A DNA stretch of 64,000 nt from Zancudomyces culisetae HAW-14-8. Taxonomy: Eukaryota > Fungi > Kickxellomycota. Of the stretch, positions 56,257-63,908 are shown piece by piece (position 1 is the first letter of the stretch; every line of letters starts with the position of its first letter). Under the pieces are notes generated by a model. That model made no database searches. It worked only from the letters and a program-made list of their open reading frames with translations, and was not told the origin of the DNA. Both the position numbers and the translations under genes were made by a program. The DNA lies in contig JBNJNM010000007.1 in the NCBI GenBank assembly GCA_052426225.1, forward strand, positions 558,001 through 622,000, given 5' to 3'.

Positions 56257-58233
56257 ATGCTGAGTGGAATTCTAATAATCTTTTATTTTTATCTGAAGGT
56301 TTACATTGCAAAATACATTCACCATGACTGGGTGGTTGAATATATTATAGCTAATCCTGACGGATTGTGCGAAAGGGTGGTGATTGGGGTCAATGGGAAA
56401 TGGCCGATAGAAACACTGGAAGGTAATGTTGGAGACGTTATTACAGTTAATGCCATGAATAGACTCAACGTTCCTATTTCACTTCACGCGCATGGGATAC
56501 GGTTTGACAGCTATCAGTATAGCGACGGTGCATTTTCTGTAAACAATTGGTGAGGGTTCAATTTCTAGAGTGTTTACAAGTTAGTTCTATAAAAATTTAT
56601 GTATATCCTGAATGACCTGTAGTGGTGTCCCGCCAGGAATGAACTATACCTATACTATCCCGTTGTCAGAGTCGGGAACTTATTGGTTTCATTCGCATAT
56701 TGATGTAATGCACTTTTATTTATTTATCGCAAAATAAATATATCGACCCAAGTAGAACTGGAAAATAACTACACATCTGATATCTGTAAAAAATAGGGTC
56801 AGTACTCTGATGGGTTACGAACTCCACTTATTGTCCGGGCAGAAAATAATGAAAATTATGTGTATAGTGATGAGTTTGTACTTACTCTAGCAGGTAAACT
56901 AAATATAAAGAGGTCGTTTGTACTCTAACAACAGCAAACAACTAACAACCACTATTCTTGCATAAAAAAAATAGAGTGGTTTCATAAGCCTGTGTTTGAC
57001 ATTATTCCATCTCTAGTTAGTTCAAATAATCCTAGTGGATCCGAGCCTATTCCCGATTCTGGAATAATTAATGGTGGTGGAATAACCGAGTTCATAGTGA
57101 AGCCCAGTACTGTGTACCGAATTAGGTTAATAAATGCCTCCTCGGCTGCTGTTTTTCATGTAAAAGTGGATTATCACAAAATGAAAATGATTGAAGTTGA
57201 TGGTACTGAGATACAAATGGTTACTGCCGAAAGCATTGAAATATCCCCAGGTCAACGAGTTTCTTTCTTGATTACAACAAAAAATGATACCAACCATAAT
57301 TATTTGATTCACGCGGATATGGACCCGGATTATTTTGATTCCATCCCAGATTATTTACACTTAAATCTGACGGCAACACTAAAATATTCTGAACTGAGCA
57401 ACTCCAAAGATCCAGAACCGCACAAATGGAATTCCATACCTGATACAGATTTAAAGCCACTAGATAAAAAGCAATATAAGACACCAGACAAAATTATAAC
57501 GATTGTGAGCGATATCCAGGAAGCTGATGATGGAACTACACGAGGACTGATAAACGGAGTGACTTTTGTACCCCCAAAGGTCCCAACGCTACTATCAATG
57601 CTTTCAATGGGAGAGTTGGCGAAAAATCCTGAAGTTTATGGTCCTAAAACAAATGCGTTTGTCGTAGAATACAACAAAGGGATTCAAGTAATTATACAAA
57701 ACGCACATATGGATCCTCACCCATTCCATCTTCATGGACATAAGTTTGAAATTTTGGATGTAGGAGAAGGTGAGTACAAAACCAAGAATAAGATCTCAAC
57801 CAATACAACATATGATAATCTGATACGCAGAGATACAGTTAACGTGCCAGGCCAAGGATATGCGGTTATTCAGTTTACGTCAGATAATCCTGGAGCATGG
57901 CTTTTTCATTGCCACAACGTTTGGCATATGCTTTTTGGAATGAGAGCTGTTATAGTCGAGGCACCACTTGAGGCACAGAGAACCATCAGAAATATCACAG
58001 AAAGCGAAAATTCTTTGTGCTTAGCAGCAGGGTTTAAAACTACTGGTAATGGTGGTGGAGGAATAGGATTGGATTTATCCGGCGCACCAAATTCACCAAA
58101 TCTGATAAACTTTGGTATTCATTCAAAGGGAGTGGTAGCACTTGGGTTTTGCGTTCTATCTGCGCTATCAGGCACATATAGTGTCATAAGTTACATCAGG
58201 GCTTTGGTGAAATTGCAGCCGGAGGGCGCTTAA
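56257..58233 (+). CDS. FET3: Multicopper ferroxidase Fet3-like (4 exons)
   Basis: Cu motifs HAHG, WFHSH, HPFHLHG and HCHNVWH; EPIP; a C-terminal TM helix; transcribed divergently from FTR1. Confidence 0.9.
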
Positions 58234-60080: not shown

Positions 60081-61718
60081 ATGAAATTTTTACAAATATC
60101 ATCGCTCGATGCAATAAATGCATTGCTGTCGTTTGAGACAAATACAGGGCATTATGTCAACGGAAGAGTAGAAGTATATTCATGTACGGAAATATTTTAT
60201 AATTTAAAACACTACGGGGGTGGAAGAAATATGTATTTTATGATTTGAAGCCCAGATATACAAGCTGATACTTATTTTCAGGTGTTATGAATACTAATCA
60301 AAGGGGGTGGGACTATTGTTTGTGTATATATACGTGTTTTTTCGGCTTGATTTTTTTTTCTTGTGGGTGTTATTTAAAGAATATTGAAAGTGATCTGTTA
60401 TATCGCTCAAATCTGCATTAAAAAACAGTCTGGGCGAGAACATTTCAACCCGGGGTACTGTAATGCTAGAACTTAAAATAACATTTTTCCTTCCCAAGGA
60501 TACCAGTCGTGACGATGTATGTGGAAAACACCAGACATCAAATTAAATGAAAGAGAATAACTGTGTACATTTAGGCAAGGCTGCGGGCGTTGATAAAAAA
60601 CTATATAGATATTTAGAAAGTAAATATCTGGATGATGTATTCGAGTCAAAGAGTTTATCGCCCGAACAGAGTTCGCTCACGAACATTGTCTCTCCATTTG
60701 GGCCAATGACTGAGAGTGCACCGCGAAAAACACTCTACTATCTCATTGCAACATTGAACGCATCATTCCCAGATTATGATTTTAGGTAAAAAAAAGACAA
60801 AGCATAAGATACATACCCTATAATATTTCAATTTGGTTACTTAACCAACAGCAATTATCTATAGAACATTACTTGCCGACCAATTTTCCAGAAAGAACGA
60901 TATACAGGCACTATTAAACACAATAAATACCACGTTCTTCAATGTGGGATGTCCAGATTCTCTAAGTGATGGGCATTTATGGAACGAAATTGACAAAGCT
61001 ATCGAACTGAATGATTGTGTGGTATATTCATATACACCAGAAGCCGAATCTGACCCATACGGAGAAGTGTGTCCGGTGTAAGTCTACATATGATTACATT
61101 GTTTCTTTGGTGTTGTAATGTATAAGGTACTTCAAAAATATGTACACTCTCTATAGGTGGTCATTTAACTACTTCTTCTACAACAAAAAATTGAAAAGAA
61201 TATTATTCTTCACATGTTACTGTTCAAGGTAAACTTTATATACTCTTATTTTTATGTTTCCATTCAAATTTTTCGTTTTCAAGAATTTTAAAGGCACATA
61301 TGAATTGAGATCCAGGGCTGGTAAAGTGGAAAAAATAACTCTGGTGCTATTCCTAATGGGGGCAACTTGATCTACTACCTTCCAAACTTAAAAATGAAAT
61401 AAAATGAAAAATAGTGAGCCGCTACCGTTTGATGAGGTATCCTCCACGGCAAACGAGGAAGTCTATTCTGACATTATCGACTTCCAAGAGCCGGAAAAGC
61501 TGGGAGAGGCGAGTCGTGATAGTTGGTCAAGAAGGTACATACGCGCTTTACTTATTTATGTCAAATTATTTACTACTTTCAGATTTGGTAACGTTGCAAG
61601 AAGGAGTCAAAATTATTAAATTTTTAGTACTATTTCACATTTATCCAGCTTATTGGCGGCTACTAACTACGCTTATGACCATTATAGCGAAATATTTGTT
61701 GAAGAGATGGAAATATAG
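60081..61718 (+). CDS. MAF1: RNA polymerase III repressor Maf1 (about 6 exons)
   Basis: MKFL...GRVEVYSCKAAGVDKKLY, PFGP...RKTLYYLIATLNASFPDYDF, LWNEIDKAIEL...YSYTP...DPYG, WSFNYFFYNKKLKRILFF and an acidic tail ending EEMEI*. Confidence 0.92.
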
Positions 61719-61951
61719 AAGCGAACTTTATTTGGTTCTGACTCATCTATTTCACCCTACCTCCTAATACATTACTACCCCTTTTTTAACAAAAAAAAGA
61801 ATAAAAAACTCACACTATCTTCGCTCGTGTATATGCCCATACAATGGGAATATCATTAGCTCGCTTATGGGTTTGAGGTGGTGGTAGACTGATGGTGAGG
61901 GGAGATACAGCTTCAGAAACAAAGAGATGTTTCATAACAAACTCGCATTAT

Positions 61952-62050
61952 GACTTCTGATTTTTCCATCACTGGAGGGAATCAAACTCTGTATGAAATG
62001 TTTATATACTTCAACTCAGGGATTTGTCAGTTCGATCCTGGCAGAAGTCT
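61952..62050 (+). ncRNA. tRNA-like structured element (not a canonical tRNA)
   Basis: 7-bp acceptor-like stem GACTTCT/AGAAGTC stacked on a 5-bp T stem GTCAG/CTGGC with a TTCGATC loop. Two further hairpins fill the interior. Confidence 0.5.
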
Positions 62051-62452
62051 TTATTATTCTTATTCTTTTTATTATTAATACCACTAAAACCACACACTTT
62101 TTCTATTTTAATATTATCTGATGTTTTAGCCAAAATTTAACTGCTTTTTAATTTTCTAATAAATTGTTACCAAAATTCACACCAACACCACAATACCCCA
62201 CAAGGCTGTGGGGGGGGGGGGGGGTGCATGTTATCTAAAAACCAAAGTTATAATTTATCCATATATTCCAGCCCAATCTCATTTATAAAATTCTTGCCAT
62301 GGCTTTGCTGGTTAAACTCGATTCCGCAACTTTTAGTTAAAAAGGGAACTGTATTAACGTAATTATTAACCAACATCAACCCTCAATTCAAAATGAGTAA
62401 AACACTATGCTGTACTAGCTAATACGAGCATTAGTTGTGTTTAACCATATTA

Positions 62453-63908
62453 TCAACTCAGAAATGCTAGAGAGAAAGAGTTTCCAACTGATAGGTTTTC
62501 TGGCAAGAATCGGAGATGTGTATTTGCAGAACCAGGTGCTTCGATTAAAATAGGATTGTAATGGTGGTCTGTAGATCCATTTCCTAGTATACCACAAAAG
62601 TTATTCAGTCCCCATATGAACAATCTTCCAGCTTCTACAAATATTATAGAGATATATTCGTAATTATTAACGTAACTTAGTCAAAGTGTGGTTTCTTGAC
62701 AAGAGTTAACAAAATTAGGTCTCATTTATATTAGTAACAGAAAAATCACTCACCATCAATAGCACAGCTATAATCTGTTGAGGCTTTAACAGCAACGATA
62801 TTCCGAAGTCCTGGTATCCGTAAAGGAGTAGTGATGTGTGTTGTTTCTTCACCCAAACCCAGTGCACCACAACCACATACGTATACATGCCCGTCATCTA
62901 GTTTTTCAGAAAACATATTAAGAAGTGTGAGTTAGGTAATTGTCAGTGATTGGGTTCAAAAGGGGATGTGAGGATAGATTGTTTTGAAATGCTGTATATT
63001 ATATATGTACACTACAACAAATGCTTACCATTTACAACCAACGAGTGGGCTCCTCCTGCAGCCGCAGATATAATCTTGCCAAACTTAAACTTGACTTTCT
63101 CTGCAGTTAATATCTATATTTGGTATTCGAATGTATACACAGAATCTTTTTTAGATATCCAGTACTTTGGAAATAAAGGGGGATTTAAGGAAGCAGCATA
63201 TACCTTATCGCGCTCACTGCCTAGCATATTGTTTCCATATTCACCATTCCCCCAACAAAAAAGCTCACCCGAATTTGTCAATGCAAAGGTAAAATCTGTA
63301 GAGGTGGAAATAGCAGAAATGAAATGGTCTTCAAAGCCAAGAACCTTGTTCGGTGTTGTAACGTTTTTTGTACATCCCGATCCTGGCTGCCCATCAGCTC
63401 CCCATCCCATACTGAAAACCTTCCCTTGATCTAACAATCATCCTTTAATTAGTATGGTTTTGTCATTAAAGTAATAAATATGTCAGAATTATATGGATGT
63501 TAACCTGTCAATAACACCGAGTGATCCATTCCTGCCTGGATTTGGATTATTTTTCCGTGCGATTCATTAACCTCCAGGGGTATATTCGTGCTTTCTCTTA
63601 TATTCGAGTCCCTCGAGTTGACCTCTCCTTCACCCAATTGCCCATACACGTTGCTTCCGGCAACGTAGACTTTATTTCTTTCTTCTACTATCAGTAAAGC
63701 CACAATGTTAGTGGATAGCTTATAGATGTGATTCAATAATAATAATCACATATTTAAAGGTATAGGGATAAATTTATATAAACAAGGTGTGTTTACTCGC
63801 TTCTTGAACAAGCAATAGCGTGTGTTCTCTGCCACATTCTATCTGAAGCACCTTGCCTGGAATTTCCAAATTAACAACTGAGGGGTTGTTGTTCGTTTCT
63901 AGTGACAT
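62453..63908 (-). CDS. RCC1-repeat protein, RCC1L/WBSCR16-like (multi-exon, probably 5'-partial)
   Basis: CGREHTL, AGSNVYGQLG, AGMDHSVLL, SMGWGADGQ, LFCWGNGEYG, AAGGAHSL and LFIWGLN repeats. A candidate acceptor near 63900 suggests exons beyond the window. Confidence 0.8.

Follow-up and report, generated by a model that had tools for sequence, protein, structure and literature searches.

A tRNA-like element conserved behind MAF1 in Kickxellomycotina fungi and its probable link to the tRNA machinery

The cloverleaf-like modules mascRNA and MEN-beta lie at the 3′ ends of MALAT1 and NEAT1, two vertebrate lncRNAs, and are cut by RNase P and RNase Z, with the CCA-adding enzyme also acting on them. 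MALAT1/mascRNA illustrates that a Pol II transcript can be 3′-processed via a tRNA-like structure, and what the three enzymes recognize is the combined geometry of the acceptor stem, T arm and elbow. In yeasts, extra-TFIIIC (ETC) sites and relic tRNA genes consist of a conserved intergenic B-box without a functional tRNA, and these can influence neighboring Pol II genes. Regulation of MAF1, the repressor of Pol III, has to our knowledge been described almost entirely in terms of phosphorylation and localization of the protein. A putative tRNA-like ncRNA of plants, CPIR-1 (Akkuratov et al., 2014, Gene 548:81; RNAcentral URS0000C5172F), is described as being located in introns of plant MAF1 genes, where it lies about 10 nt away from a MAF1 motif that is conserved in 105 angiosperm species (PMC12218528). 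For fungi we found no paper on a MAF1-associated tRNA-like structure, nor on a tRNA-like element tied to MAF1 in any of the Kickxellomycotina, and no family in Rfam 15 matches any of the MAF1 loci considered here.

The element we describe (TLS) comprises 99 bases on the plus strand, the sense strand of MAF1, in a stretch of 64,000 nt from the genome of the gut fungus Zancudomyces culisetae HAW-14-8 (contig JBNJNM010000007.1, positions 558,001 to 622,000; hereafter the window). Its parts are listed in Table 1 together with its neighbors and its counterparts in other species. A first-pass annotation of the window had noted an acceptor pairing, a T arm, a discriminator T and two non-tRNA hairpins at 61952-62050, all of which are present both in the sequence and in the minimum free energy (MFE) structure given by RNAfold. 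In the TLS a canonical T arm (G53-C61, T54 T55 C56 R57 A58) is stacked on a 7-bp acceptor stem, and no CCA is encoded after the discriminator. RNAfold, which the annotation had proposed as a check, gave the four-way junction as the MFE (-27.5 kcal/mol, z -2.1 to -2.3), and the junction also forms when the entire 357-nt 3′ flank is folded. The interior of the TLS is 67 nt, that of a canonical tRNA about 41 nt, and in the RNAfold structure its third arm is a bulged hairpin of 42 nt closed by a 4-nt loop. Homology to Maf1 of Smittium mucronatum places the end of the last MAF1 exon at ...EEMEI-stop, with the stop a TAG at 61716-61718, so that the TLS starts 234 nt downstream on the sense strand, in good agreement with the earlier estimate of about 230 nt.

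Table 1. Features of the MAF1 region of the window and counterparts of the TLS in related fungi. Plain numbers are positions in the window; L numbers denote the MAF1 loci of the relatives.
Feature	Location	Strand	Basis or remark
MAF1 gene	60081..61718	+	Pfam Maf1 matches on exons; tblastn with Coemansia, Smittium and Furculomyces Maf1 proteins
MAF1 exons	60081-60185, ~60575-60786, 60860-61078, 61158-61223, last ~61644-61718	+	Homology
TLS acceptor stem, 5′ strand GACTTCT	61952-61958	+	Same or wobble-compatible heptamer in five relatives
TLS arm 2, D-like hairpin	61959-61983	+	Remodeled in Z. culisetae; T5 run at 61961-61965
TLS arm 3, expanded "anticodon" arm without 7-nt anticodon loop	61984-62025	+	Ends in conserved junction TTT (62023-62025)
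TLS T arm, GTCAG-TTCGATC-CTGGC	62026-62042	+	B-box-like GTTCGATCC inside; nearly invariant in six species
TLS acceptor stem, 3′ strand AGAAGTC, with discriminator T	62043-62050	+	AGAAGTC perfectly complementary to GACTTCT
T-rich trailer	62051-62080	+	T5 at 62068-62072; Coemansia blastn alignment extends ~25 nt into it
RCC1-like gene, convergent	62415..63908	-	Pfam RCC1/WD40_RLD; neighbor, outside TLS
Coemansia sp. Benny D160-2 TLS	L043:5395-5473	MAF1 sense	136 nt past MAF1 stop
Coemansia reversa TLS	L050:4510-4595	MAF1 sense	158 nt past MAF1 stop
Smittium culicis TLS	L046:4238-4352	MAF1 sense	166 nt past MAF1 stop
Smittium mucronatum TLS	L051:4202-4313	MAF1 sense	174 nt past MAF1 stop
Spiromyces aspiralis TLS	L052:4838-4936	MAF1 sense	381 nt past MAF1 stop

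Could such an anatomy have arisen by chance? We simulated second-order Markov sequence of the window's composition over 36 million strand-positions and counted occurrences of a TTCRA T-loop on a 5-bp stem with an abutting perfect 7-bp stem closing 40-110 nt. This acceptor plus T-arm geometry is expected about 22 times per 27-Mb genome, and by our estimate about twice per genome if G53-C61 is additionally required. Because such geometries are expected by chance at these rates, the anatomy of the TLS alone is not significant, and its significance rests on its conservation in relatives.

Nor does the TLS correspond to a tRNA gene of any usual kind. The first-pass annotation had called for a tRNA finder and Rfam to be run on it: ARAGORN, with and without introns, found no tRNA in the window and with lowered thresholds returned only nonsense calls, and Rfam gave no match to the TLS at its gathering score, nor at E≤10 on 600 nt. 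These negatives rule out an ordinary or intron-containing tRNA. A 5-bp anticodon stem with a 7-nt loop (U33, anticodon, R37) is absent from the window TLS, as are a good A-box and U8/A14, which bears out the earlier statement that it lacks an A-box, U8 and a 7-nt anticodon loop. A tRNA-Sec-like fold (long D stem, 4-nt loop) was considered and rejected by eye; RF01852 has no match at the TLS, and the true tRNA-Sec lies elsewhere in the genome. A tRNA-derived SINE or other dispersed repeat, which the annotation had named as an outcome that would count against its proposal, was likewise rejected because the TLS is single-copy in the Z. culisetae genome (27.1 Mb, 25 contigs): searches with a 121-nt sequence, with a 24-nt pattern at up to 3 mismatches and with an 18-nt T-arm pattern at up to 2 mismatches found only the TLS itself and real tRNA genes. 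A pattern scan for further copies in metagenomes produced three matches, all of them unrelated.

Two observations on the tRNA genes of Z. culisetae came out of these searches. At G000:C12:2376020-2376107 (L032:1501-1588) lies a true tRNA-Sec gene, which RF01852 scores at 57.9 bits, above its cut-off, and which has UCA as its anticodon and T7 as its terminator; its presence fits the reported use of selenocysteine in the Harpellales, and Selenoprofiles was run in the Z. culisetae genome paper (PMC12611240). Additionally, there are five tRNA-Ile(UAU) genes, each with a 23-nt intron (L063, L073, L074, L077 and L079, on contigs C8, C19, C21 and C23 of G000), which default ARAGORN misses and which are found only with -i. 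Their terminators are runs of T5-T6.

When the genome of Z. culisetae was searched with the TLS models, the only matches were the TLS and a real tRNA-Val(AAC) gene at G000:C6:1470318-1470391. Alignment of the tRNA-Val shows similarity in the acceptor stem (GATTTCT/AGAAATC in tRNA-Val versus GACTTCT/AGAAGTC), the D stem (GTGT..TCAC versus GTGA..TCAC) and the T arm (GCCGG-TTCGAGT-CCGGC versus GCCAG-TTCGATT-CTGGC). The tRNA-Val and the window TLS differ in that the latter has no 7-nt anticodon loop, A-box or U8/A14, has an internal T5 and a larger interior, and fails both Rfam and ARAGORN. The TLS is not a decoding tRNA. From its tRNA-Val-like features it looks derived from a tRNA-Val-like source and is best seen as an exapted tRNA gene. 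A clear match to a decayed ordinary tRNA was another outcome the annotation had named against its own proposal. Judged from the copies compared below, the TLS is not a tRNA in free decay: its anticodon arm was remodeled, while its acceptor, T arm and D-like arm were preserved.

The evidence that carries most weight comes from the relatives. We located their MAF1 loci with exon 2 as the query and then with an annotated full-length Maf1 of a relative (P0122), and obtained loci from eight other Kickxellomycotina, two of which (L044 and L045) are on contigs too short to inform. As the annotation had suggested, the MAF1 3′ flanks were then aligned, and they revealed homologous elements in five species with variation that preserves the structure. 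When flanks of 800 nt were compared all against all by blastn, TLS-bearing species of different genera had no significant match other than the TLS itself, with 82-92% identity over 23-60 nt and a best E of 1e-10 (Zancudomyces versus Coemansia); the full-length Maf1 proteins of these orders are only ~55-60% identical. Congeners have nothing else non-coding in common in their flanks by blastn, and nothing upstream of the TLS aligns between species. A covariance model, R1, built from the two Coemansia copies alone, found exactly one full-length match in each of four other loci. In the window this match is 61952-62050 (31.8 bits, E 2.5e-7), coordinates identical to those in the first-pass annotation; the E-values for Spiromyces, S. 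culicis and S. mucronatum are 3.9e-6, 0.006 and 0.008, respectively. We propose a Kickxellomycotina MAF1-3′ TLS family, consisting of full-length matches to a covariance model of other members that lie within 400 nt after the MAF1 stop in the sense orientation, and the window contains such a match with the Coemansia-only model.

With R1 there was no match in Furculomyces boomerangus, in Dimargaris verticillata or on either of the short contigs, and a covariance model built from all six sequences, run with filters off, found none in Furculomyces, Dimargaris, the short contigs or the control loci. The TLS is thus present in the Harpellales, the Kickxellales and Spiromyces, and absent from Dimargaris and from one genus of the Harpellales, Furculomyces. 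That Furculomyces has no TLS although it belongs to the Harpellales indicates that the element is dispensable there; the intergenic gap behind MAF1 in this species is only 175 nt. The best explanation of the distribution would be that the TLS has been kept after MAF1 since before the divergence of the Harpellales and Kickxellales. Its presence at the same place in five other fungi, from at least two orders, probably means that it functionally links the expression of MAF1 to the tRNA machinery.

Is it MAF1 or its neighbor to which the element belongs? Smittium, Furculomyces and Dimargaris likewise have the RCC1-like gene as the downstream neighbor of MAF1; Coemansia and Spiromyces do not. Since the latter two have a different downstream gene and the TLS is still found behind MAF1, it is to MAF1 that the TLS is tied. 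The convergent MAF1/RCC1-like pair itself is kept in the Harpellales and Dimargaris (L046, L047, L051 and L053), Coemansia (L043 and L050) has a THOC2-MAF1 arrangement instead, and Spiromyces (L052) has other neighbors.

Several other features of this part of the window deserve mention in their own right. Some 145 nt before the TLS, at 61779-61810, the MAF1 3′ flank has a tract that can form a U6/A8 hairpin, with AATAAA (at 61801) after it. This tract may be a poly(A) signal or an A/U-rich element, and it aligned with no relative in the blastn of flanks. Between MAF1 and the RCC1-like gene, ~160 nt beyond the TLS, is a run of 15 G residues (62210-62224), which may be an artefact of assembling a homopolymer or a tract prone to form G-quadruplexes. 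Farther away, the Fet3-like oxidase of the window (56992-58233) is only ~55% identical to its best relatives (L037-L041). Those loci, arranged FTR1-Fet3-HD_3-Arf, have different neighbors and MAF1 is absent from them, and for this reason the Fet3-like copy in the window is probably a lineage-specific paralogue or has been rearranged.

Comparison of the six copies distinguishes what has been held from what has been free to vary. Invariant or nearly so are the junction TTT, the T arm GYCAG-TTCGAKY-CTGGC, the A that follows it, the 3′ acceptor strand and the discriminator T, and the B-box-like GTTCGAKYC is invariant in all six species. The 3′ acceptor strand occurs as AGAAGTC, ATAAGTC, ATGAGTC, GGGAGTC or AGGAGTC and the 5′ strand as GACTTCT, GGCTTTT, GACTTTT, GGCTTCT or GGCACCT, the deviations being G·U wobbles and single mismatches, a U·U in each of the Smittium species and an A·A in Spiromyces. 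In a manual register of the six copies the acceptor stem has no clean double compensatory change, only wobble-compatible single changes. Beyond the discriminator, a pyrimidine-rich trailer is common to all six, with a T4-T6 run within ~20 nt.

The two interior arms behave differently. The stems of arm 2 differ in sequence yet still pair: Coemansia has GTGA/TCAC, Smittium has TGAA/TTCA and the stem of Zancudomyces is longer. In most copies the loop of this arm contains GG, which a tRNA elbow requires. The length of arm 3 varies from 19 to 67 nt among the six copies, and in the Harpellales this arm is a hairpin of 42-67 nt. In Coemansia sp. it has a near-canonical 6-bp stem and the 7-nt loop AUCAAAC, the only 7-nt loop of the six, and this 79-nt copy is also the only one that ARAGORN calls, as tRNA-Leu(CAA); the Rfam tRNA model (RF00005) does not reach it even at E≤10. 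The arm 3 of C. reversa has no anticodon loop and forms a bulged hairpin whose loop is a T8 run. We also observed that Coemansia sp. (L043:5436-5443) and S. mucronatum (L051:4225-4232) have the 8-mer CAAACGAC in common, which in the former makes up the 3′ part of the anticodon loop together with stem and in the latter the 5′ strand of the long arm 3. Such a shift suggests that the arm 3 of the Harpellales was rebuilt when the former loop came to pair with the former variable loop (TTTG).

The four-way junction can form in all six copies and is the unconstrained MFE fold of four of them. Folded alone, each interior forms exactly two hairpins (Stouffer z -4.8, Fisher p 2e-5, values that include two congeneric pairs, which are not independent). 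Because MAFFT puts the 5′ acceptor strand in the wrong place when it aligns the six copies, we relied on a model-fitted alignment and on manual registers. The former leans towards the structure, and some of the "double changes" in its helix 1 are register effects; of the pair cells in this structure-fitted alignment, 92.7% contain standard pairs. Sliding the partners by 1-3 columns brings the share down to 31-52%, and none of 500 shuffles reaches 92.7%. The fold of the Spiromyces copy is not unusually stable (z +0.2). In every one of the six, the sense strand gives a better fold than the antisense strand, and the G·U pairs in the acceptor and T stems fit only the sense strand of MAF1, since on the opposite strand they would be A·C mismatches. 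These comparisons show that purifying selection maintains a tRNA-shaped module on the sense strand of MAF1, and that what it maintains is the acceptor/T-arm/elbow geometry and not the anticodon arm.

What might this module do? The first-pass annotation had proposed a tRNA-like module tied to MAF1, with a role in 3′ processing or sensing or as a TFIIIC site. Its first part, an element that is conserved, tRNA-like and linked to MAF1, is well supported by the comparisons above, and the role is the part we can discuss only in conditional terms. Of the refuting outcomes that the annotation had listed, we encountered none. The choice between an RNA-level and a DNA-level role is one that we infer. 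We rate the chances as about even that the TLS is an RNA element in the 3′ region of the MAF1 transcript that is recognized by RNase P, RNase Z and the CCA-adding enzyme. Selection would then be holding the parts that tRNA maturation enzymes read, that is, an acceptor stacked on a T arm, a D-like elbow arm and a discriminator U with no encoded CCA, and the decoding part, the anticodon arm, would be free to expand. MAF1 Pol II transcripts would run through the TLS, RNase P would cut before 61952 and RNase Z after 62050, and the cleavage would either define the 3′ end of the mRNA or sever it and release a small RNA of ~99 nt, as in MALAT1/mascRNA. Because RNase P and RNase Z are shared with pre-tRNAs, the fate of the MAF1 mRNA could come to depend on, and report, the load on the tRNA pathway, providing a feedback input to the Pol III repressor.

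That the transcript in question would be made by Pol II is argued by T runs within the element, which would stop Pol III: a T5 run lies at positions 4-14 in three Harpellales (Zancudomyces and both Smittium species) and a T8 run in arm 3 of C. reversa, and real tRNA genes of Z. culisetae terminate at T5-T7. A sign to the contrary is that the T-rich trailer, with its T4-T6 runs, looks like a retained Pol III terminator. The Spiromyces copy has no internal run of T4 or longer, so that Pol III transcription is conceivable there. No MALAT1-like triple-helix module is evident upstream of the TLS, and the U6/A8 hairpin with AATAAA is not adjacent to it.

A different role, at the level of DNA, strikes us as unlikely, though it explains several of the same observations. 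Under this alternative a relic tRNA gene would keep its B-box, and perhaps its terminator, as an ETC-type site for TFIIIC, TFIIIB or Pol III at the MAF1 3′ end, where it would act as a roadblock or terminator for Pol II, as an insulator, or as a sensor of Pol III occupancy that modulates MAF1 transcription. It would account for the fact that the most invariant block is the T arm with its B-box-like motif, for the terminator-like trailer kept in six of six species and for the tRNA-Val-like derivation; the internal T runs, which would lead to an abortive Pol III transcript, are as expected of an occupancy site without a product. However, a B-box of ~11 bp leaves unexplained why both acceptor strands and their pairing, the discriminator and the junction TTT have been kept, why two interior hairpins persist with different sequences, and why the G·U pairs suit the sense strand only, and there is no good A-box.

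We think it still less probable that the TLS is an independent gene for a tRNA-like ncRNA, transcribed by Pol III from an internal promoter and linked to MAF1 through co-regulation or by chance synteny. The canonical T arm and B-box, a T-run soon after the 3′ end like those of real tRNA genes, the tRNA-Val-like ancestry, the ARAGORN call on the Coemansia sp. copy and the uninterrupted Spiromyces copy would all suit such a gene, but the internal T5 of the three Harpellales and T8 of C. reversa would not, T5 being a terminator of real tRNA genes here, and neither would the degenerate A-box, the failure of the Rfam tRNA model even on the Coemansia sp. copy, or the absence of an anticodon loop from its congener C. 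reversa. Finally, that the TLS is a neutral relic or chance structure without function is very improbable, because, although the geometry alone is expected several times per genome and Furculomyces and Dimargaris do without it, it is the sole conserved non-coding island in the flank, its identity between orders exceeds that of Maf1 itself, and the covariance model finds it at the expected place in four independent loci (E 2.5e-7 to 8e-3); judged by this recurrence, it is not a chance structure.

Returning to the systems with which we began, the TLS resembles ETC sites in its conserved B-box, but whereas those keep only the B-box, the TLS keeps both acceptor strands, the junction and two further hairpins, and does so strand-specifically. 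mascRNA and MEN-beta resemble the TLS in retaining the acceptor and T arm but not a tRNA-like anticodon arm. The TLS has the features that mark mascRNA, being an acceptor/T-arm module that encodes no CCA and lies, in the sense orientation, in the 3′ region of a Pol II gene. The vertebrate modules have a lncRNA host and an upstream triple-helix stabilizer, whereas the host of the TLS is an mRNA, a stabilizer was not seen, and the processing is a predicted one. We class the TLS with two known kinds of element, the tRNA-like modules in Pol II genes and the MAF1-associated tRNA-like elements.

It is the second of these kinds that raises the most far-reaching possibility. As described in the source cited above, CPIR-1, like the TLS, is tRNA-like in structure, belongs in sense orientation to the transcription unit of MAF1 and is deeply conserved in its own kingdom, which hints at the same link between the Pol III repressor and a tRNA-shaped RNA. 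We liken the two by description and not by sequence: CPIR-1 is intronic and found in plants, and the TLS lies 136-381 nt after the MAF1 stop in Kickxellomycotina. As the TLS is in the 3′ flank rather than an intron and resembles a fungal tRNA-Val, an independent origin of the two seems likely, or at least plausible given what is described of CPIR-1. Could a tRNA-shaped decoy in the MAF1 transcript be a recurrent homeostatic sensor, cut by RNase P and RNase Z in competition with pre-tRNAs, that arose independently in fungi (in the 3′ region) and in plants (in an intron, as CPIR-1)? By analogy this is conceivable, and we regard it as doubtful; if it were true, the level of intact MAF1 mRNA, and hence Pol III repression, would track the saturation of tRNA maturation. 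The occurrence of the TLS beside MAF1 across distant fungal orders, taken together with an intronic counterpart as described for plants, points to an unrecognized route, at the level of RNA, by which the tRNA pathway feeds into expression of the protein that represses it.
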